Source of the DNA: Octopus bimaculoides
Taxonomy: Eukaryota
Assembly (NCBI RefSeq): GCF_001194135.2
Contig: NC_069008.1
Span: forward strand, 10,184,708-10,243,816
Direction: 5' to 3'
DNA: 59,109 nucleotides
Shown here: positions 10,921-58,906 of the stretch, in pieces
Layout: the number at the start of each line of letters is the position of its first letter
Numbering within the stretch: the first letter of the stretch is position 1
The notes under the pieces: model-generated
Told to the model about the DNA's origin: nothing
Seen by the model: the letters and a program-made list of their open reading frames with translations, nothing else
Database searches by the model: none
Position numbers and translations under genes: made by a program

Positions 10921-11166
10921 ATAAATAAGAGGAAAAGCCACCAAGGTGGATTCCTAATACACTAGAAGAAGACGCCAAATGGCTTTACCTCAAATACTAT
11001 ATTCTCAAAAGTTTTAGCAAATGCCAGAATGTATGTGAGCAAGACAAATTTCCTTGCTCACATACATTCTGGCGTTTGCTAAAATTTTTGAGAACATAGC
11101 ATTTGTGGTAAGGCGAATGGTGTCTTCTTCTAGCATATTAGGAATTCACCTTGGTAGCTATTCCGC

Positions 11167-11174
<8 letters not shown>
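10921..11174. repeat. Imperfect fold-back element at (TA)n (about 123-bp arms, 9-nt loop)
   Basis: 10921-11043 is roughly 85% reverse-complementary to 11053-11174; innermost 21 bp perfect; right end runs into (TA)n. Confidence 0.9.
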
Positions 11175-11216
<42 letters not shown>

Positions 11217-11876
11217 NNNNNNNNNNNNNNNNNNNNNNNNNNNNNNNNNNNNNNNNNNNNNNNNNNNNNNNNNNNNNNNNNNNNNNNNNNNNNNNNNNNN
11301 NNNNNNNNNNNNNNNNNNNNNNNNNNNNNNNNNNNNNNNNNNNNNNNNNNNNNNNNNNNNNNNNNNNNNNNNNNNNNNNNNNNNNNNNNNNNNNNNNNNN
11401 NNNNNNNNNNNNNNNNNNNNNNNNNNNNNNNNNNNNNNNNNNNNNNNNNNNNNNNNNNNNNNNNNNNNNNNNNNNNNNNNNNNNNNNNNNNNNNNNNNNN
11501 NNNNNNNNNNNNNNNNNNNNNNNNNNNNNNNNNNNNNNNNNNNNNNNNNNNNNNNNNNNNNNNNNNNNNNNNNNNNNNNNNNNNNNNNNNNNNNNNNNNN
11601 NNNNNNNNNNNNNNNNNNNNNNNNNNNNNNNNNNNNNNNNNNNNNNNNNNNNNNNNNNNNNNNNNNNNNNNNNNNNNNNNNNNNNNNNNNNNNNNNNNNN
11701 NNNNNNNNNNNNNNNNNNNNNNNNNNNNNNNNNNNNNNNNNNNNNNNNNNNNNNNNNNNNNNNNNNNNNNNNNNNNNNNNNNNNNNTATATATATATATA
11801 TATATATATGAAATTAATAAAAACAGTTGTTTGCAACGTTATACTGTAAAGGAAAATTATAGCCATCAACTAAACT

Positions 11877-12254
11877 TGACTAAGGATGTGAATAACAACT
11901 ACATTGCTAGAAATAGGAGCTAAAGTGCACCAATGCTGTTACAAAGCACATGAACATATGCTCTGCTCTAATAGGGGCTGCAATTGCCCCAAACACCTGT
12001 TTTTATTAATTTTTTGTATACACATCAGCAATCTGCTAAATCATCCATAGATTTTTATGGTGAATATATGTACTCCGATAGTTGAGCTAGCCTGGAATCA
12101 ACCAAACGAGCTAGCCTTACTGAAGATGGCTATTGAAATAGCCAAAACTGGCCGGCCAATTTAAGGAATTCTTGGTTCAGTGATTGGGATGATTGCATTG
12201 GAGCATTTTAGCTCCTATTTCTAGCTATGTAAGTGTTTTTCACACCCTTAGTCA
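11877..12254. mobile_element. Inverted-repeat element (60-bp arms) containing a hammerhead motif; Penelope pLTR-like
   Basis: 11877-11936 is reverse-complementary to 12195-12254; (TA)n on both sides; internal HHR-like motif. Confidence 0.65.
12115..12166 (+). ncRNA. Minimal type-I hammerhead ribozyme, probably inactivated
   Basis: cctta-CTGAAGA-t-ggcta/ttgaaa/tagcc-AAAA-c-tggccggcca-ATT-taagg: stem I cctta/taagg, stem II 5 bp, palindromic stem III; G12>A and a C.A mismatch at 15.2/16.2. Confidence 0.75.
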
Positions 12255-12270
12255 GGTATATATATATCAA

Positions 12271-14310
12271 CATCGTCATCATCATCATCATTGTTTAATG
12301 TCTGCTTTCCATGTATGCATGGGTTGGATGGTTTGACTGAAGACTTGCAAGCCAGGAGGCTGCACTGGGCTCCAATCTGATCTGGCAAGGTTTCTTCAGC
12401 TGGATGCCCTTCTTAACACCAAGTACTCCAAGAGTGTAGTGGGTGCTTTTTATGTACCACCAGCATAGGAGCCAGTTAGGTGGCACTGGCATCAACCATG
12501 CTCAAATGGTGCTTTTTACGTGCCATGGGCACAGAAGCCAGCTAGGCGGCACTGGCATCACTCATGCTTAAATGGTGCTTTGTACATGCCTCCGGCACAG
12601 GTGCCAGTCAGGCAACACTGGCATCAGCCATGACTACAATTTCCCTTGACTCAACAGGTCTTCTTAAGCACTACATATTGCCCAACAATTGAAGGGTACT
12701 TTTTAATGGGCCAGTTATGCGACACTGGCATTGGCCACAGCCACGATGTCACTTAAGCACAACATATCTCCAGAGGTCTCAGTCACTTGTCATTGCCTCT
12801 GTAAGGCCCAATGTTCAAAGGCCATGCATCACCACTTTGTCCCATGTCTCCCTGGGTCTACCTCTTCCACAGGTTCCGTCTACTGTTAGGGTGTGACACT
12901 TCTTCACACAGCTGTCCTCATCCATACATAACACATGACCAGCTCAGTCATCTCTCTTGCACACCACATCTGATGCTTCTTATGTCCAACTTTTCTTTCA
13001 GGGCACTTATACTCTGTCAAGTATGCACACTGACATTACACACCCAGCGGAGAATACTAGCTTCATTTCTTTCAAGCCTACACATGTCCTCAGCAGTCAC
13101 AGCCCATGTTTCACTGCTATGTAGCATGGCTGTTTGCGCATATGCATCATTCAGTTTACCTTTCACTCTGAGCGAAAGGCTCTTTGTTACCAGCAGAGCT
13201 AGGATCTCTCTGAACTATGTCCAGGCTATTCTTATTCTAGCAGCTACACTTTCAGAGCATCCACCCCCACTACTGATTTGGTCACTTAGGTAATGGAAGC
13301 TATCAACTACTTCTAGTTTTTCCCCTGGCGTGTGATGGAATCTGTTTTCTGTACATCTTTGGTGTTTATTACCCCTGTGCATCTGCCATACACAAAAACT
13401 ATCTTCCTAGTTAACCTTCCTTTGATATTGTCCATAACTTACACTGGATACGTCTTAAGGAGTGCCTTTTCTACAAATCGAGCTGGGCTATCTACCTGAA
13501 GGGATTTGTGATTTGTCTGCCTTCCTACTTACTAAGACTTTGGTTTTTGCTACATTGACTCTAAGGCCCTTCGATTCTAATCCTTGCTTCCACACCTGAA
13601 ACTTCTCTAGTTCTGGTAGTGACTCAGCTATTAGAGCAAGGTCATCAGCATAGAGGGGCAGCCTCTCTTCAATCCCTCTGTTATTGCTTGGAGGACTATG
13701 ATGAATTAGAGGGGGCTGAGGACTGATCCTTGGTGAGCCCCTACTTCTACCCAGAATTCATCACTAGTTGCCAATGCTCACCTTACTGACAGCATCCCTG
13801 TACAGGGCTTGTACAGCTCTCACCCACCACTCACCTATCCCTAGTTTCTGCACTTACCACCAGATAAGGGATCAGGGGACTCTGTCAAAAGCTTTTTCCG
13901 TGTCAACAAAAGCCAAGTACAGAGGTTTATCTTTGGCTAGGAATTTCTCTTGCAGTTGCCTTACCAGAAATATAGCATCAGTAGTGCTTCTCCCTGGCAC
14001 AAACCCAAACTGCATCTCATCTAAACTAATTCTCTCCCTAATTAGTTGGGTTATGACCCTCTCTATGACTATCATCACCTGATCCAACAATTTGATACCT
14101 CTGTAATTATTGCTATCTAATGCATCACCTTTACCTTTGTAGCAATTGATTATGGCAATTGACTATGGTGCTGCTACACCAGTCATTGGGTATGATGCCT
14201 TCATGTATCAACTGGTTGACTAGACTATAGCCCACACCACCAGATATTTTAAACCTCTCAGCAGTGATTCCTGATGGGCTGGGGGCTTTCCTTGTCTTCA
14301 TCAATAATAT
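12271..14310 (-). mobile_element. RTE-clade LINE, 5'-truncated, (GAT)n tail
   Basis: DEMQFGFVPGRSTTDAIFLVRQLQEK..AFVDTEKAFDRVP, YADD region; (CAT)n at 12271-12290 is the 3' tail. Confidence 0.9.
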
Positions 14311-15044
14311 TTTTGTACGTACCTGACGCACATGTCACGCTTAAGAGAAAGAAATTGTTGAAAGAAATTTTGTTGCTTAAATAAAATTTTTTAACTTGTA
14401 ATTTCTGAAAGAGATTAACACTCATGCCTACTGGTCCACTGAAGCAGCAACGATCTTAACAGGAAAATTAAGATACTTAAACTTAACATGTTTGTTGAAC
14501 AAGGGGGAGAGGAAGTGAGAAAGAAAGCGAGAGTGAGAGGAAGTGGCTGAATTCCTTTCAATTCCTTTCTATGATTGAAATGAAATTGACCCCTGGCTAT
14601 TAAAGGCCCAACCATACACACACGCAACACACACACATATTTGTTTTACGTCTTCTACCCATTTGAATTCAACCATACACCAGNNNNNNNNNNNNNNNNN
14701 NNNNNNNNNNNNNNNNNNNNNNNNNNNNNNNNNNNNNNNNNNNNNNNNNNNNNNNNNNNNNNNNNNNNNNNNNNNNNNNNNNNNNNNNNNNNNNNNNNNN
14801 NNNNNNNNNNNNNNNNNNNNNNNNTTCCAATTTCTTTTTTCTTGTATCAAGTAATGGATGAAAGCATTAAAAAAAATTAAATTCATAGAGCCGAACAAAA
14901 TCAAAAATATTAATTCTATTTTTTTCCCTTCCCTTAATACTAACAAGAGCATAGTATGAGAGAGATTTGGATGTTATTTTTAACAAATTGTTGTTGATTT
15001 GTATAAGTAAACAAAAACTGAACACATACACACATATATATGAA

Positions 15045-15245
15045 TGTGTTTGTATTTGTCCCCCCCCCCAACCCCATTGCTTGACGACCGATGTTGGTGC
15101 ATCCCTGTAACTTAGCTGCTCAGCAGAAGATACTGATAGAATAAGCACCAGGCTTACAGGGAATAAATCCAAGGGTCAATTTCTTCGACTAAACAGTGGT
15201 GCTCCAGCATGGCCTCTGTCAAATGACCGAAACAAGTAAAAGAAT
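15045..15245 (+). mobile_element. SINE-like repeat
   Basis: Same family as 399-598. Confidence 0.75.
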
Positions 15246-15915
15246 ACGAGAAAAACGTTCCTTACCACTAAACCAAGTTGGTTCTCTGAATATGTACAAT
15301 GTATTCTTAGGTTAAATAGTAATTCCGTTTACGTTTGTGTATCTGAGATATTTTGGCTGGATTATATAGTTATCAGTTTTACTCTTCTTTCTATATTCTG
15401 TAACTATCACAATATACTTTTCTACTATAGGCACAAGTTCTTGAAATTTTTGTCGGGAGGGAGCCAGTCAATTAGGTCGACCCCAGTATGCAACTGGTAC
15501 TTAAGTCGACCTCAGCAAAATTTGAACTCAGACTATAAAAACAGACAAAATACCGCTAAGCATTTCACCTGGCATGCTAACGATTCTGCCAGCTCACCAC
15601 CTTTAATTGTCACAATATAAAAACATTTCTCATGGCATCAGCACACAATTTACAGACGCTTACATTTTTTATATTTTCTGTGAAATTTTCACAGGTTCAC
15701 CTAGTATCTCATAATTGCTTTATCTACCAAGGTACTGCTAATTCAAATCCCAGGTCCCTCTGTTGGTTTGAAATTTGGCAGACACTCTTTCTCCCATTCT
15801 TTTCATTTCGCAACCTTTCATAGTGGCATCTCCAAGTCTCTCGCTTTGCAGTATATATAGATGTGTGTGTGTGTGTATATGTGTATATACATATGTATGT
15901 GCATATGTGTGTGTG

Positions 15916-15946
<31 letters not shown>

Positions 15947-16050
15947 ATGTGTGTATTTATAGATTTATACCAAAATTTGGTAAAAATATTGTATCTGTTA
16001 TCAAACATAGCAAAATTCTCACATGTAAGTTTTTGTATGTATATCACTTA

Positions 16051-16342
16051 AAATAAGAGCTAAAAGATGATCCATTGTAAAAGCTTTATTATGACCTATG
16101 ATCATTTCGATGCAATATCCAGACCAATTCATGCATATTATAAAATATGGAATATTGTATCTCTTCAGGGTCAGATTAATTCATAGCAGACAGATAGTAC
16201 TGTCTGCTATGAATTAATCTGACCCTGAAGAGATACAATATTCCATATTTTATAATATGCATGAATTGGTCTGGATATTGCATCGAAATGATCATAGGTC
16301 ATAATAAAGCTTTTACAATGGATCATCTTTTAGCTCTTATTT
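16051..16342. repeat. Perfect 142-bp inverted repeat with 8-nt spacer
   Basis: 16051-16192 is the exact reverse complement of 16201-16342; spacer gatagtac; followed by a long (TA)n. Confidence 0.97.
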
Positions 16343-16344
16343 AA

Positions 16345-16432
<88 letters not shown>

Positions 16433-16739
16433 TTTATATACTGTAGAGCTTTGGCAACCAATGAACAATTCCCTGTGGCCAAGATTGCTGAACTAAAGAA
16501 ATTAAAAACATGTGCAACTGATAAGCAGGTAGGTGCCAAGCCATTATTATTGTTGTTGTTATTGCTGTAAAATACCTGTCAAACCGGGTAATGAATGGCT
16601 GTGTGGTTAAAAGATTACTTCCTAATCACATCTTTCAAGATTTGATCTGTGTGGCAAATGGGGCAAGTTCCTTGTACTAGAGCCTTGGATTGTGAATGGA
16701 ATTTAGCAGGCAGAGACTGTACAAAATTACCATATATAT

Positions 16740-16950
16740 GTCATCATCACCATTTAATGTCCATACTCTATGCTGACATGGGTTGGGCAGTTTTAAAGGA
16801 TCCAATAGGTCTAAGAACTGCTTTATGCTTCTGTGTCAACTTTGTTATGGTTTCTACAGGTGAATGCCCTTCCTAATACCAACCACTTTACAGTATGTAG
16901 TGAGTACTATTTCTGTGCCACACTACTAATGAGGTCACCATGTAGCTTGG
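16740..16950 (-). mobile_element. RTE LINE 3'-end fragment
   Basis: catcatcaccatttaatgtcc..tgcccttcctaataccaaccact, same as the 12271 tail region; similar fragments at about 19960, 28130-28700, 38590, 39790, 42950, 49300, 57520. Confidence 0.75.
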
Positions 16951-17749
16951 AACACTACAAAACCTGAGGTGGATAGAAAGAAGACAACTTTATGTTAGGA
17001 GAGGAGGGGTTAAAGTATGTGAAAGTGGAAGAAGCAGGTTGTTGTTGTAGTAGAGCTACATGGCCATTCACAGAGGAGAAGAGTGAGGATGTTTGGTAGG
17101 AGCAGCAAAGAGATAAATATAAATAGAAGTGTTTGGGTGTCCAGGTGGCTCTTCGAAGTACAAGGTGAGTAGATGTGAATGGGGACAGAGGAACTAGAAG
17201 TATGGTTGTTTGTATCATATGTACATGCATATGTATGTATGTAAATATATATGTCTGTATGTGTATATGTGAATGTTTACATTCAGTGATGTCTACACAT
17301 GAAATTACTGGAGTAAATGCAGTAACATTATGTTAACAATTCCTATAGCTTCATGTTTTTTGGAAACCTATTGAATAAAAATCCCTTATTTGCAACGCAA
17401 ATAAGAATTTGTGACAATAGAAACATCCAGCTGTAAAATAATGCCTTAATATGATTTTGTCTCGCTTATGCTAGAATGGAACAACAGGTGTTTTGCAAAC
17501 AAGTTATATACAGAGTTTCAGGTTCAGTTCTTGAGCAACTTGCTTCTACTAAAGCTCTGAGCCAGCAAATACCTTGTGAATTAATTTCAAAAAAAGAAAA
17601 CAGTGGAAGCTTGTTGCATGTGAGTGTGTGTATAGAGAGAGAGAGAGAGTGTGTGTGTGTGTGTGTGTGTGTGTGCATGTGTGTATTAGCATTATTTAGT
17701 ATCCCCTTTTCTATCTTGCATGGTCTGACAGAATTTATCAGCAGATTTT

Positions 17750-18660
17750 TTGACAACTGAGGTCCGTCAGGGTTGTGTCTTGGCTCCCACTCTGTTCAGT
17801 ACCTGCATGGATTAGATATGTGACCAAATGGTGGCTCAATCAAGTTGTGATGCACTCATTGGTGAAACTAAGATTACAGACCTATATTTTGCTGATGACT
17901 CAGTTATTTTTGCTGAGTCTCTGAATGTCTTAAGGAACACTCCCTTTTCACTGAGTGAGAACCACTTGTCAAATTAAAATAAGAAATCCAGTCCTTCTTT
18001 GGCTTCTTGGAGGACTCCACCTCGTCTATGTTGTCGGTGAAATTCTTGAAGTTGTTGACCAGTTCACTTATTCTGATCTTGGCAGTGAGATTCATATCAG
18101 CTTTAGTTATGAATCTGAAGTCCTTAAAAAACTTGGACAAGCCAGTACAGCTGTGGAGTCATTGGACAAGGATGTTTGACACTGCCAATATCTGTGCAGG
18201 AGGACAAAGTTTCAGGTCTTTAGATCTCTAGTCCTCCCTGTCCTGCTCTATAGTTGTGAGATTTGGATACTGTTTGAGGACTCTTGGGTTTCTCCTGAAC
18301 TCCTTTGGTACCAGGACACTTCATATAATTATGGGTTACCATTGGTCAGATTTCATATCCAGCCAACAAGTCTACTCAGAAACTGTGATGCATCCAGTTA
18401 CTTGTATGATTCAGCAGCACCAGCTCAGACTGCTTGGACATGTTGTTTGATTTTCCAAGTTAGACGCTGCTTACCATATTCTCTTCACTGAGGATCCAGC
18501 TCAGTTGACAGCCACAGGGTCATGGTAGATGATGAGATGTATCATGGAGATGGGGACTGACTTGGACTCTGCTCAACAGGTCAGTCACCAGTCAGGACCC
18601 AGGCTACACCAACAAATTGTGAATGTAGCAACACACTGCAATGGCACATATCCCCACAGC
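17750..18660 (+). mobile_element. Degenerate RTE-like LINE (second family), RT C-terminal part
   Basis: QGCVLAPTLF-like, DLYFADDS and FTYL/SDLG motifs and QLRLLGHV; many stops. Confidence 0.7.
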
Positions 18661-18904
18661 TGATCTCACCTGTTTCCAAGCAAAGTAATGTTTCCTATGA
18701 CCAGACATGTTTCCACAGAAGATTGGAAATGAAGAACACTGCTTGCAAGACATTAACATTCTAATTAGTTATATTCAATATATATATTCTTTAAATATTT
18801 AAATTGAAATGTTTTTGCTTTTCTTTTTAGAAAGGAAAATTACATCGAAATGTTACCTGAATGACTTAAAATTAAAAAGAATTCTTTTAATTCTTCTGTT
18901 GCAG

Positions 18905-19301
18905 CAGCTACCAAATGCCAAAGTGGCAGAGCACCTAGTGCAAAGTCTACAGGAATGTTCCAGTATGCAGGAAATAGTGCAGACAGTCTACAAATGTGGG
19001 AATGAGATCTCCGAAAGCAAGATACGTGAATTTGAGATTGAATTTGAACGCCTGAATAGCAAAATTGATCACTGGAGATCTCAGTATGGACTGTTGGCAT
19101 TAAACCTGGAGGAAAGCAAGACCCTTACCGACCGACTAAGTGTGCTCATTGGCAAGTATGAATCAAACAACACAGCACTCCAGCTGGCCATCAACTACTC
19201 TGATCAGGCAATTGAGGCATGTGAGGTGTTGTGTGCTGTTATGGAGAGTGAACATGGTTTCAATCTGGCTAACTTTCACGCCAGTGGTCTTAGTGGTTTT
19301 G
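18905..19301 (+). CDS. MCC: MCC / USHBP1-family coiled-coil protein, internal exon
   Basis: QLPNAKVAEHLVQSLQECSSMQEIVQTVY..ESKIREFEIEFERLNSKID..GKYESNNTALQLAINYSDQAIEA closely matches recalled human MCC VAEHLAHSLQDCSNIQEI..ESKIREFEVETERLNSRIE..GKYESNATALRLALQYSEQCIEA; acceptor ttgcag|cag, donor g|gtaagt (phase 1). Confidence 0.93.
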
Positions 19302-19551
19302 GTAAGTTTTGTTCTGTTGATTCTGCTATTGTGGCTGTTGTTTAAACCCAGGTCAGTCCTGCTCCAGCAGTTGTATATTCAAATGATATGTGGGGGGTTC
19401 TCTGGGATTGATCATGTAATGTAGACAGTTATGATGACTACAACAAGGGTTAACAATCTATTAAAGCTGTTCATGATTTTTTCAGTCCATGAAGAAATAG
19501 TTTTGATCTGTTTGTATGACTACTTTAAGGTTTACATATATATATATATGT

Positions 19552-19945
19552 GGTTCAGGCATGGCTTGTGGTAAGACTCTTGCTTCATAACCACATTGTT
19601 CCGGGTTCAGTCCCACAGCATGGCACTTTTGGCAAGTGTCTTCTACTATAGCCTCAGGCCTTATGAATGGATTTGGTAGATAGAAACTGGAAGAAGCCTG
19701 TTGTGTGTGCGTGTGTGTGTGTATCTTTGTGTTTGTCCCCTACCACCACTTGACAACCGGTGTTGGTATGTTTACATCCCTGTAACTTAGTGATTCAACA
19801 AAAGATTCCAATAGAATAAGCACCAGGCTTGGCAAAAAAATTAGTACTGGGGTTCAATTCATTTGACTAAAAATTCTTCAAAGCAGTGACCCACCATGGC
19901 CACAGTCTAATGACTACAACAAGTAAAAGACAAAACATAAAAGAT
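19552..19945 (+). mobile_element. tRNA-headed SINE
   Basis: A-box-like tggcttgtgg and B-box-like gggttcagtccc at the 5' end; body as in 399-598. Confidence 0.75.
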
Positions 19946-20452
19946 ATATAATCACTATCATTAACATCATCATCATTATTTAACATCTGTTTCCCACGCT
20001 GACATATGTTGGACAGTTTGACAGGCACCAGCAGATCAGAAGACTGCACCAAGCTCTACTGTCTGTTTTCGCATGGTTTCTATGGCTGGATACACTTCCT
20101 AACACCAACCACTTTAAAGAGTGTGAATGTCTACAGTAGCAGTGAGGGCAACCAATAGCTTATAAGAGAGGATTCCTCAACAAAGGGGTATTGAAGGAGG
20201 TGGCTTTGTTCCAAGTGAGGAAAAGTTAAAGTATGAACCTAGAGAAAGAAATAGCTGTCTTGCAATAAAGGAGATACATGGCCGCCTCAGTTGGAGGGTG
20301 TAAGAGAGAGAAAAAGAGGATCAAAACAGTAAAGATGTGATGGGGGTCACACTTATGTTACAGGGAAGTGCATGTAAGTGAAGTGTAACCAAGGATAGGA
20401 TAGGTTGAGTGGATAGGTAACTTTACAAGATTATTAAAGGTGCAATATATAG

Positions 20453-20483
<31 letters not shown>

Positions 20484-20555
20484 GCATATATATATATATA
20501 TATACATGTGCATATATATATATATATACATGTGCATATATATATNNNNNNNNNN

Positions 20556-21014
20556 TCAAACCTTCGCAAACATATACTATTTCAGTGAAACACATTCACT
20601 GATTACAAAAATTAGAAATAATACATTTCTAAATCTCTTAGAGAGACTTACGCAGTAGTGATGTGATAAAGTAGTTGTATACTGCCAACTTAACGTGACA
20701 GTCCCAATAAGGGAATATACGGGAATATACTACTGCTATTTAGCTCTAGGAAGCTGGACCGCTTCCTGTCGGCGTTGACACATTTCCTGTGTCCTTATGT
20801 TTGCGAGGGAGAGACAAACTCCTCCACACAGCCTAGCCTGCATTCAGGGACATGTTTCTGAGTCTTTGCTTGTCATCAGCCTGAAGTAGCATGACCAGCT
20901 GGTTGAAAAGGTCTGTCAAACCTTCGCAAACATATACTATTTCAGTGAAACACATTCACTGATTACAAAAATTAGAAATAATACATTTCTAAATCTCTCA
21001 GAGAGACTTAAGCA
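20556..21014 (-). repeat. 360-bp tandem unit (about 1.3 copies visible) carrying a hammerhead ribozyme; retrozyme/pLTR-like
   Basis: 20556-20650 repeats at 20916-21010 (1 mismatch in 95); HHR inside the unit; array cut by the N-gap at 20546-20555. Confidence 0.75.
20843..20885 (-). ncRNA. Minimal type-I hammerhead ribozyme with intact catalytic core
   Basis: Minus strand: ttcagg-CTGATGA-caagcaaagactca-GAAA-C-AT-GTC-cctgaa: 6-bp stem I, palindromic stem III (ACATGT), GUC triplet; stem II weakened. Confidence 0.8.
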
Positions 21015-21119
21015 GAGAGACTTAATACATTTAGAGAGACTTAATGCATTTAGAGAGACTTAATACATTTAGAGAGACTTAATACATTTAGAGAGACTTA
21101 ATTCATTTAGAGAGACTTT
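20998..21119. repeat. 19-bp minisatellite (agagagacttaatacattt)n, about 6 copies
   Basis: Direct tandem repeats visible; the unit joins two motifs present in the adjacent 360-bp repeat. Confidence 0.9.
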
Positions 21120-21289
21120 GAAATCCTAAAAATGCACCCCAAATGACCTAGACTTATGGATGTAAAGAATTGGATAACGAATGAGAAAGTAGAGGTATCC
21201 ATATTGCAGAAAGTAAGGTACATGGAAAGAAAGCTGCTTCATTGTGAAAAGCATCATCTCTAATGTTTGGGCAGACTGCACACTTCAAT

Positions 21290-23600
21290 ATATGTTAAGT
21301 GAAGCCGACAATGCTTCTGGGTAAACTATGTTTTGCGTAAGCCCAGTGTTGGTAGAATAAATATACAAGTCATCTGCATTGCTAACTCAAGAGCATGCGA
21401 CATACAGTTGTCCATGAAAAAAAGCAGCGTAGATGTAAATTGAGGCCCACAATTTTTAAAGTTTGACCCTGAACTTTGTTGATCATCATAGCAAAGCACA
21501 ATTGCACTGGGAACTGGAGGCGCTTGAAATGAAATGGCATATTTGAGGGAATAAGGGGCATGCATGGAATGTATGCAAGCTCTCCTTCATGGCAACCAGC
21601 AATAATGGTTGCTTCTAGGACATGACTTGTCATTGTAGTTATAATCAATCTTGTACCATTGCAAAGTCATGATGGTTCCAAATTCCTCAAGTGCATGATA
21701 GATGCACCTTTCTTTAGGAACAACGTATGTGGTGGCAGTCCTGTGGGTTGTAGAGAGTTGAGAAATTCAACTGGATTCTCCACAGCGGCATGTTCGTTAT
21801 TAGTATCAATGGAGACAAACGTTGAAGCATGTCCAGTTAGAATGTGGAGGAGTTCATGGTTTACTTTATCAACGCTTTCATTCCGAGGTGCTAAAATAGC
21901 TCTCTCTGCAAACCATGCTATGTTTTTGAAATTGTCTTGCAATGTGGGAAATACCTTTTCTTTAAGCTCAGCCAATATAGGCACCATGTGCCCACATTAC
22001 AGTACATGCTACATTCAAAAGTAAGGTGCCATTTCCAATTTGTAGAAGTTGATCAGAGAATTCCTCTGCTAAGGGGTCGTTGTAGAGATGATCTCGCATA
22101 TTCTTGCTTAAGACTTTAGACATGCATAGATCTCATCAGCTCATGCACCCCGTGGTATGACTGGTAATATTTGATGGAAATCCCCTACAAGTACAACATT
22201 TAAGCCCCCATAATGGCAGTACTGTTTCTAATATCCCTTACTGGCCTATCTAGGGCTTCTAGTGCACCATGGAGTTCCATCATGCATTCATCCCAGACAA
22301 TAAGTGTAGTTTGTTAGCAGAACTTCCACTGTCAGTGATCATTTTGAAATACTGCACATTTGGGCATCCGTTGAAGTCAAATTGAAAGGTAATTTGAACA
22401 TTGAGTGAGCTGTTCGTCCACCTGTTAACAAAGTTGCCGCTATCCCTGATGATGTGACAGCAATCACTATGTTTCCCATCAACCTTATTTTTGCCACAAG
22501 TAGGTTAAGTAGAAACATTTTCCCCATTCCTCCTGGTGCATCAGTGAAGAAAAGATGTCCTTCTCCTTGCAATGTAGACACTACTATTTCATTGTAAACA
22601 GACCTTTGCTCAGCTTGCAATAATGGTTTACTTTCATCAAGTTGCCTTTTCAGGGCATCCAAGTTGTATGCTCTTTCTCGAATGACTTCTCTTGAAAGGC
22701 CGTGATGTTCAGCTGAAGGTGTTGGAATGCCGTAGTTGGATAAGCTTTTGGCCCCAATGGAATTAAGCATGTCTTCTAAATGCAATAATGCTTCGGTGTA
22801 TATAACCTCCAAGTAGGAGATACTTAGCCCATGCAACCGTCCAGCTCCATGAAGGATGTCATCAGATAAGCTGTCTTTGTGGCTTTCCCAAAGTTGTAGT
22901 GGATTCAGTAAATCGCAATGGCACAACATGATGGCAAAGAATCATCTTAGTTGGTAAGCTGTGCATGCGGTTGCTACGTCAGAAAGTGCTAAACTCTAGT
23001 GACTGCCATCTTTGAGAAGACCTTGTAGTTGGCAGGCTTGTTGAAATGTTTCGCAAATCAAGGAGTTTATCATTTTAAGGTCTTTGAATGACATTGGTCC
23101 AGCAACTTTGTGGAGGAGCATCCGGAGACAGTAGCATTCAAAGTTTTTGGGGTGGACTATATAAACTCGACCTGGAGCATTACTTTTTTTTATGTGTGGC
23201 TACTCTTCGATGGTTACACCAAGCTTTCTCCTCTTCCACTTCTTAACATGGTTATTCCAGGCGTAATACTTCAGTACGTCTGAGTAGAAGATAGTCACAG
23301 CAAATGCATCACATCTACACAGGTCAAAGAATGCTGTGAAAGTCATCACATCTGAAAGGCCAAAGACAGCCATGTCAGACCCTTTGTTTATATATTTGCA
23401 TGCATACTTGATGGAGAGAACAGAATTGCAAAATTCCACATCAACGTGTGCCTTAAAATCTCGTAGCAATAGAAGACTATATGGAATGATCCATCTGTTG
23501 TCTACAACAACTGGACTTTCTTGTGGTCGAAGAATGAAATGGAATCCACCGTCTCCCAGTTTGCATCGTTTGTATGTTGGATATCCATCATGTCCAGTGT
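21290..23600 (-). mobile_element. Degenerate Helitron Rep/Pif1-helicase
   Basis: GYPTYKR..GG, DNRWIIPYS..AHVDVEFCNSVLSIKYACKYINKGSD (Rep); DAPGGMGKMF, SSGIAATLLTGGRTAHSMFKLP, RAILAPRNESV, LPPHTLFLKKGASIMHLRNL, QFPVQLCFAMMINKVQGQTL (helicase). Confidence 0.92.
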
Positions 23601-35759: not shown

Positions 35760-38550
35760 GAGTGAGTGGATCTGAGTGGAGTAGTAATCAGGTTTTAGGA
35801 TGGGTTGTTATGGAGAGGAGTTTTGGAGAAATTTTTATTGATTAAATTTGGGATTTAGAATTTATTTATGCATATAGAGCTTTATAAGCAAGTGTGTATG
35901 TTTGCGTGTGTCCCTTTTGATGTGTTAGTAGTTTAGTTATATTTTGACTAAGTGGATTTAATCTTTTACTTTGACAATGTAAATGTCAAAGATACAGAGT
36001 CCAGTATTTAAAACATCAATAAGCTGATGTGTAAACTATTTTGTAATGGAATTTTTTTAGGGGTTTGCAAAGAACATAAGTAAATCCTGTTTTAGCTGGT
36101 CAATTTATTTACTTGTTATTGTTGAGCATTTCCTATTTTTATTAGGACAGTGTTGGTTATTAGTCAGGCATGCTATGGTGTTGTTAGTATAGAAAATTGT
36201 TTCTCTTGTGCTTTCATCATCATCCAGTGTTCTAAATCAAGTTTTGTGCCCATTAACGGGGGGTGGTCAGATCTACCTCAATGCCATAGAAACCACCCTC
36301 AAACCATCTCACCATTTTGCCTGGTTTTGGGCATCCTCCTTTTTCAAACCAACCCTCCCAATCTCCTCCTCCACCTTTTTCTCTGTCTACCTCACTTTCA
36401 CACTCCATTTACCTCAAATGCAATCACCCTCCTCAGAACAAGCTCTTCATCCCTCCTCAATACATGCCCATACCACTTCACTCCATTCGCCCTTGCCAGC
36501 TGATACACCAATTCCTCCAATCCCAGCATTCCCATCAAATCCTCAGTGCTCCACTGGTTCCACCAGCCCTCCAGCTCCTTTCTCACATCTTCCACAAACA
36601 AACTCTCTCGCCAGTCTTGGGATCACCTTCATTTTCATATATCTACCATGAATCCATTTCCCACATCTCATACATAACACTGCATTTGCCATTACCCTCC
36701 TCCCACATACACCACATGGATCCACCTTACTCACCAACACTTCTCCTTCCACCCCACTCACCATCACCTTTGTCTTCCCGCAGTTTACCTTCAAACCCTT
36801 GCTTTCAAATGCCTCCTTACATTTCCCAAACTCTCCCCTCAATCCCTCCATTGTCTCACTCATCAGAACAAGCTCATCCACATACAGTATCTCCATTATC
36901 AATCCCTCTCTCGCACTCTCCATCACCACATCAGCCACTATCACAAACACCAACTTTCACTGCAAACTCCTCCGACAGCTCTCATCCAATTCTAACTCTT
37001 GTATTTACCCCCTCATACAAACTCATCACTAACCTCGATGTTCATGAAAGGATTTGGTTAGGTGTAGAGGTTGATGATCTGTATGTTTCTCTCGAGGGGC
37101 TCATTGAGCAATTTCATTAATATATGAAGATTTTAACCCATGTGGAGGCAGTATTTGTGAGCTATGTGCTTATAAATATTTCTCTCATTCTGTTTCAGAA
37201 GTAGTATTTTATAATGTGTTATTTTGGGCCCCTGGATATATGCACTATAAAAGGGGTGTATATATTCATGTATATAAAAAATATATATTAAAAAATTGAA
37301 AATATGACAATGTAAAATTTAAGAAAGAAAAGGAAGAAAATAATTAAAAGAAGGAAAAGAGTGTGTATGTAGGTAAACTTTTAATTTGTAGAGTACTAGT
37401 TTAGTGTAAAGATGTGAAAATGTATTTTTATTGAATATTATTATGGTGGTAGTTTATAGGGGAGTGGTGTTGGTGAGAAATTAATGTGTAAAGCCATCAG
37501 AAAAAAATTATTGGTTTGAAATGTTTTAGTATTTTAAAGATTTTGTGCTTCCATAGAAACTAGCTCAGAGTTTGGTCCATGAATATTAGAATGTGGTAGG
37601 ATTCATTAGTACAAAATTGGCATGTGAATGTACTTTCTAATTTGGATGGGGTATTTTTTAAATTTTAATTTGGATAGGGAGTGCCATATCATTTTTCCTG
37701 TTTGGGTTGCATGTGTGTTGTATTGTGTCTTAGACTGGTTTGCTATCAATCCTATATATGGTATTGTGTTTGTGGTTACTGTTGCACTTCATACAAATTT
37801 TTTTGAGAGACAGTTTCCTTCTAGAGGGCAGGATGAAGGCATTCTAAATTTGCAATTGTTATTATGTATGTTTTAGGTATTCTCTTTTAGATAATTTTTG
37901 GTGGTTGTAATTGGCTACAATTTTTTTTTAATAACAATTTTTTGCTGTGTTTGTTTATTAGTTTGCAGTATTTGTGATTGGGGCTGGAAGTGTTTTTGCA
38001 AGATTTTGAAAAATAATTTAGCTATTGATGTGGAGATTTGTATGTTGAAAGGGGGATTAAACCTGATGATTTCTTTTGTCTATTCTTACATTTTTTATTA
38101 ATTGTGTGAGGTTTGTTGTTTATATATTTTGTTTTTCCTCTTGTAACTGCTGTTGTTTGGAGCTTTGTTATATGGGATTGCTATTTTGTTTTGTAGTTTT
38201 TCATTTTAAGATAAAGAGGAAATCCTAGAAATTCTTTACTGGGTTTTGATAATGTTTTTGGGATGGCTGGATAATTTTTCATTATCTTGTAAGTCGATGA
38301 TAATGTCTAGAAAGTTGACTGACTTTAGTTATGTTTCCACTGTAATAGAGAAACCCATGTCTTTGAAGTTCCTTCTTAAATTTATACGACTGTGTACTTC
38401 TCCTAAGGAACCACATCACGCAAAAAAAAAACTGATAAATACAAAGTTGCTTACAATACCATAACCCCAAATTTAATCAATAGAAATTGCTCCAAAACTT
38501 CTCCATAACATCCCACCCTAAGATTTAATTACCACTCCACTCAAAACCAC
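35760..38550 (-). mobile_element. Penelope-like element (RT C-terminus + GIY-YIG), with inverted terminal repeats, interrupted by an RTE
   Basis: Minus-strand relics KSVNFLDIIIDL..SSHP..IIK, PPFNIQISTSIAKLFFKILQKHF, SCPLEGNCLSK; about 35765-35865 is inverted relative to about 38460-38550. Confidence 0.65.
36213..37035 (-). mobile_element. RTE-like LINE 3' part with a PHD-like Cys/His cluster
   Basis: EILYVDELVL..GLKVNCGKTKVM..DPCGVCG..LCMRCGKWIH..FVCGRC; WYGHVLRR; (GAT)n tail at 36213. Confidence 0.82.
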
Positions 38551-39012
38551 ACACCAAAGGAAAATTTTAACCACACTCCAATTGTCACTTGTGGCATGGT
38601 TTCTATAGCTAGATGCCCTTGCTATTGATAACCACTTTGCTGTGTGCTGGGTGCTTTTTACATGCCACTGGTACAAGTGCATTTATGCAGCACCAACATG
38701 AGTGCATTTCACATGGTACCAGCATGGAGGCTTGTATGTATGCATTTTAGTTTCTGCTTATTGATAAGATTTTGGAGGGGTTTCTTGGTGATTTTTTTTT
38801 TTGTTTTTGTTTGTTCTTTATATATGACATTGCAAGTTTTTTTGGTTTTTTTTTTTTTTGTATATTTCCCTAAGTCCATCATGCGTTCCCTAAAGATCTG
38901 CAGTGTGTTACTGCCATCACTCACCTAGGAGTGCATCTTTGTGATTTGTTAACCATATACAGCCATGCCTCTATCCAGTTATGACATTCATATATTCTTT
39001 CTTTCATTGCAG

Positions 39013-39093
39013 TTGCGTCAAAATGAGAATCGGCCAGCATTGCCAGATGACAAGACTCATGCTGCTGCCTCTACAAATGAGACATCCCTATAG
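39013..39093 (+). CDS. MCC: MCC terminal coding exon with PDZ-binding C-terminus
   Basis: ctttcattgcag|TTG.. phase 0, LRQNENRPALPDDKTHAAASTNETSL*; human MCC ends RPHTNETSL. Not in the ORF track in this frame. Confidence 0.9.
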   Translation: MRQNENRPALPDDKTHAAASTNETSL

Positions 39094-39301
39094 CAACACA
39101 CCACACACCCACTCCCAATCCCTTCTCCTACTACTACTCCCTTTTGAATTCCATGGCAGCCCATCCTCTCTCCACCATTATCACTAGCCTGCCCACCACC
39201 AACAACGCCTTTATTTATTTCAAACTACTTTTTACAACTTATTACTCACCCCACTCCCTTTACACACATTCAACACATATTTTTCGCTTGTTTTATATAA
39301 A

Positions 39302-39360
<59 letters not shown>

Positions 39361-39729
39361 CGTAATTATGTAATATATGTGTATATTTGTGTTTGAACAC
39401 ACACACACATATTCTTTACCGGTTTCAGTCATGCTGGAGTACTGTGCTGAAGAGATTAAGTCAATCATATCATCTTCAGTGGTTATATCAGAGTAGTGTC
39501 TGACAGGTTAAGTTACCTTTTGATATGAAGGGATGCAAAACAAGTCAATCTACAAACAAATTACAAATATACACTCATAAACACACACACTTACACACAT
39601 ACATATACACACTCATATACACATACATGTATACACACTCATAGATAGAGGTACCTTTTCTTTTCTATTACTTTTCTCAGTCATCGGATTGCAGTAATGC
39701 TGAGGCATTGCCTTGAGGAATTTTAGTTG

Positions 39730-39790
<61 letters not shown>

Positions 39791-41297
39791 TTTAACATGC
39801 AGTTTTCCATGCTTGCATGGGTTAGATTTTTTTATACCTGGATGTCCTTCCTGTCACCAAACCTCACCTATTTCCAAGCAGAGTGACATTTGCCCATGGA
39901 CAGACTTATTTTCATAGAATATTGGAAATGAATGACACTGCTTGTATGAACAAGAGTCACATTCATTTACAGCTACCACATGATATGAAAACAAAGAAAG
40001 ATATACATACACTCATACATGCACAACTAGCTTCTTTCAGTTTTCATCTACTAAATCCACTTATACTAATATCTTTATTTACTTGTTTCAGTCATTAGAC
40101 TGCAGCCATGCTGGGGCACTGCCTTGAAGAACTTTTAGTTGAACAAATTGACCCTGTTACATAAAAAATTTTTTAGCCTGGTACTTATTTGATCGATCGC
40201 TTTACTGAACGCTAACTTACAGGAACATAAACACACCAACACTGGTTGTCAAGCAGTGCTAGGAGACAAACACAGGCACAAAGACACACACACATATATA
40301 TATGAAGGGCTTCTTTCAGTTTCTGTCAATCAAATCCACTCACAAGGCTTTAGTTGTTCCAAGGCTATTGTGCCATACAGTGGGACTGAAGTGGAACCAT
40401 GTGGTTGGGAAGCAGCAAGCTTCTTACCACACAGTCATGCTGTACCATTATCACATTTACTGTAAAGTTGTGATAACCACTACACAAAGTTAATATCACA
40501 ACTTTGATTGTACAAATTAGCTGAGATTACACAACTCAGTGGTCTCCTGTCAGAGTGGATCACAGTATCATAATATGATGTTATATATAACATCATAATA
40601 TAGAAAGCAGAAATATGTTTTATCTTTCTTTTATCTTTTATTTGTTTCAGTCATTGGACTGCAGCCATGCTGGGGTACTGACTGGAATGGTTTTGTCCAG
40701 GGGTTCTCAATCATTTTTTATCTATGGATCCCTTTCATTACTTTTTTTTTTTTTTTTTTTTTTNNNNNNNNNNNNNNNNNNNNNNNNNNNNNNNNNNNNN
40801 NNNNNNNNNNNNNNNNNNNNNNNNNNNNNNNNNNNNNNNNNNNNNNNNNNNNNNNNNNNNNNNNNNNNNNNNNNNNNNNNNNNNNNNNNNNNNNNNNNNN
40901 NNNNNNNNNNNNNNNNNNNNNNNNNNNNNNNNNNNNNNNNNNNNNNNNNNNNNNNNNNNNNNNNNNNNNNNNNNNNNNNNNNNNNNNNNNNNNNNNNNNN
41001 NNNNNNNNNNNNNNNNNNNNNNNNNNNNNNNNNNNNNNNNNNNNNNNNNNNNNNNNNNNNNNNNNNNNNNNNNNNNNNNNNNNNNNNNNNNNNNNNNNNN
41101 NNNNNNNNNNNNNNNNNNNNNNNNNNNNNNNNNNNNNNNNNNNNNNNNNNNNNNNNNNNNNNAACTCAATTGCTAATCCCTTATATTTATGATGATAAAT
41201 GGTCTTACCGATAAAGGTTTATTTCATACTGAACTACTTGGCAAAATTGTTAATTGTTAATTCTATTATTAATTGACGATTCCCTGCCCTCATTTCT

Positions 41298-41330
<33 letters not shown>

Positions 41331-41335
<5 letters not shown>

Positions 41336-41719
41336 AGCAGGCCAAGTGCTTCAAGGGTTAAGCTTGGGAAAGGACCAGGAAAACACTGGTGGTGTAGAGA
41401 GGGAAGAATCATATTTATTGACAAACTGCTAGTCCTCCTGAAAAAACCTTGTGCAAGCCTACACTTTGGAGAAGATCATTTCAGAAAAAGAGGGACAAAG
41501 AGAGTGTGAATGTGAAGATAGGGGAGAGCAACTGCTATATGTCTAGTCAGACTTTGGATCTGCATCTGAAATGATCTTCTCCAAAGTGTAGGCTTGCACA
41601 AGGTTTTTTCAGGAGGACTAGCAGTTTGCCAATAAATATGATTCTTCCCTCTCTGCACCACCAGTGTTGTCCTTGTCCTTTCCCAAGCTTAACCCTTGAA
41701 GTAGTGGGTCTGCATAACT
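41331..41719. repeat. (TA)n-adjacent fold-back element: 137-bp near-perfect arms, 79-nt spacer
   Basis: 41349-41485 vs 41565-41701: 4 mismatches, no indels; weaker pairing extends to 41331/41719. Confidence 0.93.
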
Positions 41720-51252: not shown

Positions 51253-52090
51253 CTGTACAGCTCTTACCAACCACTCATCTATCCTAAGTTTCTGCATTGA
51301 CCACCAGTTAAGGGATCAGGGGACCCTGTCAAAGCTTNNNNNNNNNNNNNNNNNNNNNNNNNNNNNNNNNNNNNNNNNNNNNNNNNNNNNNNNNNNNNNN
51401 NNNNNNNNNNNNNNNNNNNNNNNNNNNNNNNNNNNNNATCCATACCCTATCCCAATGTCTAAAAGTGAAAATGAACGGCTGTTTTGTTCTCACTGTCCAG
51501 TTTTTGTTACCACTTTCACCCTCCGCAAAAAATCCCAAATGTTATTTAATTTGCTTTGTGGGAAGGACTGTTTTAACGAAGTCGCTTATTGTCCTTACCT
51601 TCGAAATGCAGAGAAGATAAGACAGGGGACAATTGATGAAGGGAATGTTCTTTATGCTGCATGTCTCATTTTTCTGTTTGATTTTTTCTGTTGTTCGGAA
51701 AAAAGTTCGTTTTCTATGTTTTTGTTTTTTATGTTTTCGTTTCTCATTGTGTCTGCATTTTTTTGATATCCTGTACCCATATATGCATGTATATATACAT
51801 ATATGTGTAGGTATGTACATATATGTAAGTATATATGCATATATTAATATATTATTTATATTATATATATAGAGAGAGAGAGAGGGAGGGAGGGACAGTT
51901 ACTTACTGCATGTTTGGAACTGTGTCGTTCTTTGAGCTGATGCTGTAGTTCCTTGATTTCATTGTTCAAATGGTCAATCTGGAGACGATAGGCCTGACCC
52001 TGGGACTCCTTGTCACTCATCCGAAGATCTAAGGCCTTTTTCTCCTTCTCTAGTAGGTAGTTCTGAGATTTCAGTTCAGCCTTTTCTTCC

Positions 52091-53189: not shown

Positions 53190-53800
53190 ATTCTAGGTAT
53201 TACTCTATTATCAATTCGCACACATTTAGGATTGGTTTTTTCCAACACAAAAAATCTCTTACAAATTATCTCCTCACATAATATTAGCCTGTTCAATAAG
53301 AATACATTTACTAATACTAACATTAATTTAGCTAATATCATCCATGCCCCTAGAAATATTAATAACAAGGTTATTGTCTTTGAAGTCAATTCCAACAGAA
53401 TTAAGTTTATGTCAAGTAATTCTAAGATGAAAAACTCTATATACCAGTGTAAAATAACTTCAGGTGCCGATGTCTTTTTTTATACAGGTAGTTCTTCATC
53501 TCAGTTATCTAAAAGAATTTCTAATCATTACTCTACATTTAGGGATAGGAATAAATGTAACAGTACAGGGCTTAGTAAATTAATTTGGTATCTAAAAGAC
53601 CATAATAAACAATTTAATTTAGATTGGTTGATTTTCTCCATTTTGTTCTCTTATGATAAAGGCAAGGAATTTTGTCTTCTCTGTAATTGTGAACTATTTT
53701 TTATTCTTTTTCTAAAAATCCCCTTGTAAACACGGTTATAGAGTGTGCTTATCAATGTAAACATGGGTAGAAACACACCTTTAGTTCATATAAGTGATAT
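53190..53800 (+). mobile_element. Penelope-like element, GIY-YIG endonuclease fragment
   Basis: SIYQCKIT..YTGSSSSQLSKRISNHYSTFR..NSTGLSKLIWYLK..W..CLLCNCE is the PLE-type GIY-YIG C-terminal domain. Confidence 0.8.
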
Positions 53801-57085: not shown

Positions 57086-58827
57086 ACACACATATCTATA
57101 AAGTCCTGGAAGGATTAAAAGGTAAGGTATTTTCCAAACCAGTACTCAACCGGAGCTTTAAGCTTTTTAAATTGTAGTTTTAAGTAAGACTGGAATTCTT
57201 GTGTAGAAAAGCCAGATGTCACATCAGTGAAATCAGTGTGTGGGTTTAGCAAAGAAAGTGTTTATCACATCTTTAATGACCAGCTACAATTGTGCATCTG
57301 TCAATACTTGGCAGATGCACAATGTAAGAGCACACTTTTGATACAAGTCTAATGAGGTGCCATTCTAATGTTAAAAAGCTATAAATATGTAACTTCACAC
57401 AGAGAAGTTTTGCATGAATTGACTTTAAAAACAATGTTGGTACAGAAACAATTGTAACTGGTCATTAAAGATGTGATTAACTCATTCTTTGTCTTCTTAT
57501 TCACATGACACACACACGCACACATCATTTTAGTATCCAGCTTGCATGGTGCAGATGGAATTAGTTGAAGAAGAATTCTTTTGGTTGGATGCCTTTCCTA
57601 CTGCCAGCCATCATCTGTTTCCAAGCAAGGTAATATTTCGTTGTGGCCAAATATATTTTCATGGAACACAAAATGACAAGCAACATGTGTATGATGATGA
57701 TGCTTATTTTATAACTTTTGTATGATATCAAGCCAAGGAAAACACACACACACACACACACATGAAGGCTGACCTTAGGATGTTGAGCCTCACAGAAGAG
57801 ATAACAAATGACTTAGATAACAGGCAATTTTCTGTGCCTGATAAAACCTGCCAATCCAAGTAAAAATAAGGATCTAAAAGCATATAATTTTGTCCATGCT
57901 CCTGCATTTAAGTTATCCCCAGAACACATCTTTCAACACCCACACCTCTATCACTCTTCAAACTAACTCAGCTGCTGTAATTATGAGAGCAAAGATGAAC
58001 ATATTCCATCTGTCACATTCTTGTGCTCCTGCATTTCCCCTTCCCTGGAGCCACCTCCCTGTGTCTCTCATTTTGCATTTTTGCTATCATTTCATACCAC
58101 TGTTGAACACAATTTCATATTAGCACCATCCTCCAATCCACACTTTTTCATCATTCCCTTTATATTCACTGCTACATGCACCAAGTCTCTGTTTTTGTAC
58201 TAAGTACCCTTCTCTCTACCATCACTTTTCAGGCTGCCCTCCACCACACCACTTATTTATTGCTACTTATCACCTTCATCTTCCTCCAAACTAATTTTCT
58301 CCATTGACCATACCAATTTCTCCATTTGTTGTTCACTGCACCACCTATATTTCTATATTCCCTACCTCAATCCATCTGTCAGTAATTTCACACTCTTGTG
58401 AACTTCCTTCATTTTCTGCTAGGGTGGCCATGTATTTCATCTAACCGTCTACCATACTCTTGCTTCTTAACACATATGATAAGCTTCCTTCCTCAGTCAA
58501 AGGATCTGGTCTTGTGAGCTACTTTGCAACCACACTAGTAATTGTAAGGCAAAAAAGCACTCAGTACACTCTGTAAAGTGGTTGACATTTGGAAGAGCAT
58601 TCAGCTGTGGAAACCATGCCAAATCAGACATTGTCAGATCTGGTCAAATTGTTCAGCCCATTTCAGCATGGAATATGAACACTAAATGATGATGAAGATG
58701 TGTGTGTGTTTATTATACATGTATATAGGATGGGCTTCTTTCAGTGTCCAAATCTGCCAAATCTGCTTACAAGGGTTTGGTCAGCTCAAGACACATGTCC
58801 AAGATGCCATGAAGTGCAACTGAGTCC

Positions 58828-58906
<79 letters not shown>

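Follow-up and report, generated by a model that had tools for sequence, protein, structure and literature searches.

The stretch of Octopus bimaculoides DNA analysed here (the window; 59,109 nucleotides of GCA_001194135.2, CM046628.1, at ~10.19 Mb) holds an MCC/USHBP1-like gene (PF10506) and five fold-back elements, E1–E5, each of which abuts a (TA)n microsatellite. The gene lies on the plus strand and was recovered by a translated exon search. Mapping of the annotated protein to the window gives credible exons at 16448–16528, 18902–19300, 27363–27506 and 33338–33460, and a last coding exon at 39010–39090 that ends in a C-terminal ETSL. E1 and E2 precede the first exon that could be mapped, E3 and E4 sit within introns, and E5 follows the stop codon of the last coding exon by 2.2 kb. 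The whole window has 15 gaps and a G+C content of 38.9%, and ~54 kb of it is readable.

Inverted repeats were located with a blastn-based scan that took arms within 1.5 kb and excluded microsatellites, using 20 block-wise dinucleotide shuffles as the control. Eight non-microsatellite inverted repeats occur in the window against none in every one of the 20 shuffles. An earlier note on this DNA had described five long-armed fold-backs, each abutting a TA microsatellite and all unrelated in sequence, and the present analysis bears it out on these three points. E1–E5 are all present at essentially the places it gave, each within a contig and with no N in its sequence. Their lengths range from 254 to 389 bp, with arms of 61–155 nt that are 87–98% identical.

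Structure and sequence of the five elements

E1 (10921–11174) is a near-complete palindrome of 254 bp, its arms (10921–11044 and 11054–11174; 124 and 121 nt) being 87.6% identical and separated by a spacer of 9 nt. E3 (16043–16348) is a palindrome of 306 bp with arms of 151 and 149 nt (16043–16193 and 16200–16348), which are 98% identical and separated by 6 nt. E5 (41331–41719; 389 bp) has two arms of 155 nt (41331–41485 and 41565–41719) at 94.2% identity, with a 79-nt spacer. The remaining two have wider centres. E2 (11873–12257; 385 bp) has arms of 64 and 63 nt (11873–11936 and 12195–12257), 87.3% identical, around a spacer of 258 nt, while E4 (27585–27895; 311 bp) has arms of 67 and 61 nt (27585–27651 and 27835–27895), 93% identical with a 10-nt indel, around 183 nt. 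E2 is read on the plus strand; no strand is assigned to the other four.

Arm identity is highest toward the centre of the elements. The inner ~141 nt of the E3 arms are perfect and all three mismatches are confined to the outer 8 nt, and five of the nine mismatches between the E5 arms fall within the outer 18 nt. Among the five elements arm divergence varies from 2% to 13%, indicating separate events over time.

No kinship was detected among E1–E5, as the best local alignment scores of all 10 pairs fall within the shuffle distributions. Two terminal motifs that pairs of elements seemed to share, AAATAAGAG (E1 and E3) and GGAAAAG.ACCAAGGT (E1 and E4), were set aside as chance likenesses. The arms of the five contain no tandem sub-repeats. 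All five are non-coding, with no open reading frame (ORF) longer than 70 aa. In two protein collections no relative was found, neither for the translated E5 arm in the one nor for the concatenated ORFs of E1, E3, E5 and E2 among the 1.84 billion representatives of the other. These protein searches say nothing on copy number, as of O. bimaculoides the collections hold annotated proteins only. An exact look-up of 10 ORFs of the window matched one, in a single-member cluster. Metagenome scans with a 20-mer of E5 and with an abundant octopus short interspersed element (SINE) returned no matches, showing that the collection is without octopus DNA. The centres of E1 (11002–11094; 53.5 bits) and E3 (16142–16252; 65.8 bits) match the plant microRNA families MIR2600 and MIR9486 below the gathering scores; a microRNA reading was rejected and these are taken as generic long-hairpin matches.

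Docking at (TA)n and locally copied DNA

The window contains 24 perfect (TA)≥5 runs, 530 bp in total, and an element was counted as in contact with a run when its end lay within 10 nt. Such contact was found for five of the seven clean inverted-repeat elements, and not one random placement in 200,000 gave as many as four. Within the window the enrichment at (TA)n expected from the earlier note is therefore present, and the TA link of the fold-backs is non-random, far beyond chance.

The run at E1 (11172–11216) stands at its right end, measures at least 45 bp and enters an assembly gap of 570 N (11217–11786) that has TA runs at both edges and separates E1 from E2. The run beyond this gap (11787–11809) is 63 nt left of E2. 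The order E1, (TA)n, gap, (TA)n, 63 nt, E2 resembles an un-nested array, with a join that passes through the unread gap. At its right end E2 touches a (TA)5 run of 11 bp (12257–12267), and a TA dinucleotide lies ~1 nt or less from either end of the element. E3 has the longest of these runs, 84 bp at its right end (16349–16432), ending 16 nt upstream of the coding exon 16448–16528. The runs at E4 (27556–27584; 29 bp) and E5 (41300–41331; (TA)16, 32 bp) are at the left end, the former beginning 27 nt after a gap of 10 N.

At the end opposite the long run, E1, E3 and E4 have a short TA patch and E2 has a single TA. The right flank of E4 reads TATATATTTATATATA. TA is found immediately outside both ends of E1–E4. 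Since the ends sit in or beside TA repeats, a target-site duplication of 2 bp and one of 9–10 bp are indistinguishable here.

Simple repeats also meet other elements in the window. (TA)n and (TG)n runs stand directly at SINE ends at 351–372, 12257–12267, 19536–19549 and 58871–58906, which marks TA runs as general landing or break sites in the window. The short run at 12257–12267 is common to E2 and to an apparent minus-strand SINE, whose (ATG)n tail follows it directly. A compound repeat at 20454–20545 consists of (TA)n blocks interrupted every ~32 nt by CATGTGCA and enters a gap of 10 N. The inverted repeat at 39298–39794 was rejected as an element, being merely (TG)n(TA)n facing (TA)n(CA)n.

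Two of the five elements contain DNA with a copy nearby. The interior of E4 (27670–27844) matches 28863–29037 on the plus strand, 1.2 kb downstream, at 88.7% identity over 177 nt and with the same orientation. This likely source comprises the 3' part of a SINE-like repeat and a further 133 nt (28905–29037). The SINE-like part has another copy at 15466–15602, and the 133-nt part has no other copy in the window, which makes local capture the simpler reading and agrees with the claim that one element carries captured local DNA. Alternatively, the E4 interior may be a nested, 5'-truncated copy of a longer repeat. In E2 the segment 11990–12014 repeats the element's own left flank at 11810–11833 in inverted form, with 22 of 23 nt matching. 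Because these two segments interleave with the main arms, E2 is no simple palindrome.

The hammerhead ribozyme that one element had been said to carry did not survive scrutiny. No Rfam hammerhead reaches its gathering score anywhere in the window, and none appears at E≤10 in 10500–42500 (32 kb), in E2 alone or in E3 alone. What E2 contains is a degenerate hammerhead-like motif of three helices at 12115–12166 on the plus strand, read by hand as CCUUA-CUGAAGA-U-GGCUA(UUGAAA)UAGCC-AAAA-C-UGGCCGGCCA-AU-U-UAAGG. Against the core CUGANGA...GAAA...UH it has CUGAAGA, AAAA in place of GAAA (the catalytic G12 being A) and an extra U after A9, and it fails every defining hammerhead test. Its helix-III loop is palindromic, as in Penelope-type ribozymes, and it lies in sense orientation ~90 nt from the TA-touching end. 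A descriptor written post hoc from the motif matches this site only in the window, and any match was found in one of 200 shuffles. On this sequence evidence the motif is probably a relic rather than noise. A second candidate in E3, CUGAAGAG...CGAAA, was rejected as it has no helix I, no fold signal and no Rfam match.

Candidate origins of the elements

[quoted passage not shown] Like MITEs, they are short (under ~800 bp), non-coding and bounded by terminal inverted repeats. A transposase would insert them at TA dinucleotides or (TA)n tracts, and a TA run, offering many targets or a favoured DNA structure, would let them accumulate. The target-site duplication would then be concealed within the repeat. 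Lengthening or shortening of the flanking run separately on each side could leave one long and one short flank. Some copies may have been reworked in place by interrupted gap repair after excision, with template switching; the repair filler would be the direct copy from 1.2 kb away in E4 and the inverted copy of its own flank in E2. E1–E5 would accordingly be mobile and present in multiple copies, and TA runs may either attract such elements or grow out of their insertion.

Elements of this kind are known, and no cephalopod description of them was found in literature searches. The closest precedents, by analogy of structure, are the plant elements MuTAnT, TAFT (maize), Micron (rice) and SaTar (guayule, rice, sorghum, citrus), all non-autonomous Mutator-like elements (PMC4486113, PMC5907723). 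MuTAnT of Medicago is 292 bp long with 144-bp inverted repeats, 'spawning a foldback', and lies within (TA)n; its flanks are unequal (25/6, 8/111 and 13/2 repeats) and its empty sites have approximately nine repeats (PMC4486113). SaTar of guayule comprises 15 unrelated families of 380–1700 bp with inverted repeats of 40–250 bp, 62–95% of them microsatellite-flanked, and forms end-to-end, un-nested stacks (PMC5907723). The octopus elements share with these four a size of 200–1700 bp, imperfect arms of 40–250 bp, near-complete palindromes, placement within (TA)n, unequal flanks and, on the reading proposed here, many unrelated families per genome. However, the precedents are restricted to plants, reach tens to thousands of copies per family, make 9–10 bp duplications outside microsatellites and have an autonomous mudrA-type partner, and the long TA run is one-sided in all five octopus elements.

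A second comparison comes from another octopod, in the orthologous gene region of ENA ERZ21867824 (L002). An 829-bp element at 11091–11919 of L002 has 43-nt inverted repeats and stands between (TA)8 and (TG)n(TA)36. Its coding sequence corresponds to the catalytic C-terminus of a mariner transposase of the Mos1 type (PDB 4mda, E=2e-11; weak HTH_48 and DDE_3 matches). Judged by its sequence it is an internally deleted mariner, a TA-inserting element docked at TA like E1–E5. On reading by eye, with no formal alignment run, the termini of E1–E5 show no likeness to its inverted repeat GGTGCATACAATAAGTTTCC. L002 was the only related locus compared for an empty site, and it aligns to the window at exons only.

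Two superfamilies may be considered. E1–E5 may belong with Tc1/mariner, which would imply a TA duplication, or with Mutator/Foldback, for which the duplication would be 9–10 bp. DNA transposons dominate cephalopod repeat content and Tc1/mariner elements are abundant in cephalopods (PMC6962438). MITEs derived from Tc1/mariner, such as human MADE1 and plant Stowaway, resemble the octopus elements in their TA target, 2-bp TA duplication and short, palindromic, non-coding derivatives. In contrast, the octopus arms (61–155 nt) exceed typical mariner inverted repeats, CAGT-type termini are absent and E5 has no TA at one end. Mutator/Foldback elements of animals (Drosophila FB, nematode Tm1, Phantom) offer long arms, short MITE-like derivatives and capture of host sequence between the arms (PMC3169594). 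Nematode Tm1 has asymmetric outermost motifs, of which the clusters of outer-end mismatches in E3 and E5 are reminiscent, and makes 9-bp duplications with no target preference; its arms consist of 13–15 bp tandem sub-repeats (PMC3169594), which the octopus arms do not have. Of the ORFs of the window that were scanned, none was Mutator-like. Helitron and hAT termini gave no fit.

Several observations weigh against transposition by such families. Within the readable window none of the five has a second copy, a result that is uninformative at this search size, nor did an autonomous partner carrying the same inverted repeats come to light. The ends of the elements, AATAAG, AACTTGAC, TCACTT, GTTTTAGGG and GTTAAGC, are without the usual CAGT motif of Tc1/mariner, and Foldback-type tandem sub-repeats are absent from the arms. 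The one-sidedness of the long TA run also counts here, as does the right end of E5, where CT stands in place of TA. Finally, the interleaved inverted pairs and hammerhead-like relic of E2 fit a Penelope-type retroelement better.

An origin by snap-back insertion of a retroelement is the next account, and an unlikely one. The five would be head-to-head, 5'-truncated 3' ends of a Penelope-like or non-autonomous (retrozyme-like) element. A GIY-YIG endonuclease would nick (TA)n, and the reverse transcriptase would copy the RNA and then switch onto its own complementary DNA, giving arms that are born identical with their 3' ends outward. The Penelope-like Naiad and Neptune elements show a strong (TA)n insertion bias, heavy 5' truncation and a frequent adjacent, inverted, 5'-truncated copy, and canonical Penelope-like clades have hammerhead ribozymes in their pseudo-long terminal repeats (PMC8557442). 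This likeness to Penelope-like elements (Naiad, Neptune, Penelope/Poseidon) and animal retrozymes, in (TA)n bias and possibly in inverted truncated pairs, is joined by the E2 motif. E2 can also be read with unequal arms of ~64 and ~320 nt and TA on the 3' side, as for two differently truncated copies, and the E3 arms are identical save for the outermost 8 nt. A weak, sub-threshold Pfam match to GIY-YIG (E=0.039) in the ORF 53232–53729 on the plus strand, 11 kb away, may be a Penelope-like relic. However, no Rfam scan finds a hammerhead and the E2 motif has A at G12. No reverse transcriptase or GIY-YIG endonuclease ORF lies in or beside E1–E5, and no arm matches a protein. Cephalopod Naiads are reported as old remnants, whereas E3 is very young. 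The symmetrical arms and small spacers of E1, E3 and E5 (6–79 nt) would moreover need both copies to be truncated at one point. The earlier note's diverse class of (TA)n-targeting elements stands as the best-supported reading, with the plant fold-back MITEs, which the note did not name, as precedent. Its suggested link to Penelope is less likely, leaning as it does on one degenerate motif that no Rfam model accepts, with no adjoining reverse transcriptase or endonuclease ORF.

More doubtful still is an origin with no mobile element at all, in which a break at the fragile edge of a (TA)n tract is followed by snap-back priming and template switching that copy the native flank in inverted form. 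The growing strand would reach a TA-rich patch and anneal to TA across the break, leaving one ancestral arm and one inverted copy of it. This would account for the absence of shared sequence among the five, the one-sided long run with a short TA patch at the far end of E1, E3 and E4, and arm identity that peaks near the centre. The templated local insertions at two loci (E2 from 11810–11833 and E4 from 28863–29037) also favour it. Self-complementary TA should, however, give a palindrome centred on TA, and none of the five has a central TA, the runs lying at the outer ends. In its simple form, fold-back synthesis at TA cruciform breaks, as the earlier note had proposed, is therefore not upheld. 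A very high rate would be needed to give five separate events, differing in age, within 31 kb. Snap-back tracts of 60–155 nt are long for end-joining polymerases, which counts against repair of this kind. Known transposons share the anatomy of E1–E5, and a real mariner is found in a like configuration in the other octopod.

A broader proposal, with a slimmer chance again, is that octopus (TA)n tracts are sites of recurrent replicative snap-back synthesis that makes hairpins from arbitrary local or transcribed sequence. Either a repair polymerase or a retroelement reverse transcriptase could drive it, with the self-complementarity of TA aiding resolution of the intermediate. If this were true, E1–E5 would reflect a mutational process and not transposon families, one that seeds dense ADAR double-stranded RNA (dsRNA) substrates in coleoids.

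An assembly artefact, in which a short-read assembler made palindromes at contig ends near TA runs, is highly improbable: four of the five elements lie 43–169 nt from a gap, at least one contig in the window is misplaced and E3 is perfect over ~141 nt, but the two arms show 6–13% divergence and indels in E1, E2, E4 and E5 where an artefact would be perfect, making a fold-back artefact impossible, while E3 is 1.2 kb from any gap and differs at its outer ends, a graph error at a TA run would centre TA in the palindrome, and gaps beside TA runs are expected regardless.

Gene context, neighbouring repeats and RNA folding

Two further inverted repeats lie apart from TA runs. E6 (23600–24476) has two 157-nt arms at 86% identity that enclose 563 nt, part of which is a gap. 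Fifty nt of its arm recur at 100% identity at a contig edge, 51438–51487, 27 kb away, followed by abrupt divergence. By eye, its left arm begins where an apparent relic of a Helitron N-terminal ORF, itself without a Pfam match, ends. E7 (57250–57491; 242 bp) has 44-nt arms at 91% identity and a TA run at neither end.

Relics of other mobile elements are also present. PIF1-like helicase ORFs on the minus strand at 21382–22929 (Pfam PIF1, E=5e-25; PF21530 on the annotated 106-aa product) are probably Helitron-derived, and the adjoining ORF 23200–23679 has no Pfam match. A sub-threshold Pfam DDE_1 match (E=0.021) on the minus strand at 1387–1710 may be a pogo-like transposase relic. A search with an octopus long interspersed element (LINE) reverse transcriptase returned only matches 57–76% identical to the query and no closer octopus copy. 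An NCBI protein labelled as an Escherichia coli 'RNA-directed DNA polymerase, partial' (P0069), whose contig is 586 bp long, shares 73% identity with this LINE enzyme. Its sequence suggests that it is probably eukaryotic contamination of a bacterial record.

The gene model of the MCC/USHBP1-like gene is unreliable. The annotated O. bimaculoides protein (P0063) takes in SINE- and LINE-derived stretches at 28625–28900, 29684–29788 and 31138–31254, and it omits an MCC exon (EEKAELKSQNYLLEKEKK..., EEKAELKS...) that is found at 52089–51910 on the minus strand. This exon lies in a 794-bp contig (51438–52231) flanked by two gaps. In L002 the EEKAELKS... exon is on the plus strand, between the exons that match the window at 18.9 kb and 27.4 kb. 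Its position in the window is 18 kb downstream of the orthologous L002 position with the strand flipped, and from this comparison the contig is probably misplaced or misoriented in the scaffold.

Gaps are also found close to the fold-backs. The nearest gap is 43–169 nt away for four of the five elements and 1.2 kb away for E3, a pattern to be anticipated if short-read assembly tends to fail at TA runs and palindromes. In practical terms, gaps in the assembly fall where the elements and their TA runs are. One such gap, of 10 N (27519–27528), separates the exon 27363–27506 from E4, so the distance of ~80 nt from the splice donor to E4 spans it. At E3, the branch-point region of the intron (16349–16447) consists of TA repeat beside the 143-bp perfect hairpin of the element. 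E3 with its TA run, 16 nt before one exon, and E4, ~80 nt after another, are close to the splice sites of a conserved gene, making effects on splicing testable.

The predicted RNA folds of E1–E5 range from -102 to -288 kcal/mol, with z scores of -9 to -42. E1 reaches -167.5 kcal/mol (z -23), E3 -245.6 (z -42) and E5 -287.6 (z -36). Unbroken helices are predicted to be 143 bp in E3, 64 bp in E5, 42 bp in E1, 23 bp in E2 and 21 bp in E4. On transcription each element would give an RNA duplex of 60–150 bp that is near-perfect. The earlier note had seen the elements as a source of intronic dsRNA, and the folding potential is there, particularly in the three longest helices. Their intronic placement holds for E3 and E4, may hold for E1 and E2, and does not hold for E5. 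From these modelled folds, the five are a plausible source of dsRNA for editing.

In octopus an exceptional fraction of loci can form local dsRNA that is long and near-perfect, the hyper-editing signal is likewise exceptional, and octopus and frog are the two species of highest local dsRNA potential (Porath et al., PMC5625713). The folding of E1–E5 agrees with these data. The authors worked with no octopus repeat annotation, and they report that a repeat which is a palindrome needs no partner copy to be edited (PMC5625713). The frog offers a parallel in the palindromic Harbinger MITE of Xenopus tropicalis, a heavily hyper-edited ADAR substrate (PMC5625713). Like E1–E5 it is a self-palindromic repeat that gives dsRNA with no partner copy, whereas its superfamily and target site differ.

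If E1–E5 are TA-homing fold-back transposons, a habit documented mainly in plants (MuTAnT, TAFT, Micron, SaTar) would extend to an animal; literature searches found no description of TA-homing by an animal DNA transposon. If the proposed role in dsRNA formation is also true, the elements would name a concrete sequence class behind the unexplained dsRNA density and hyper-editing of octopus (PMC5625713).

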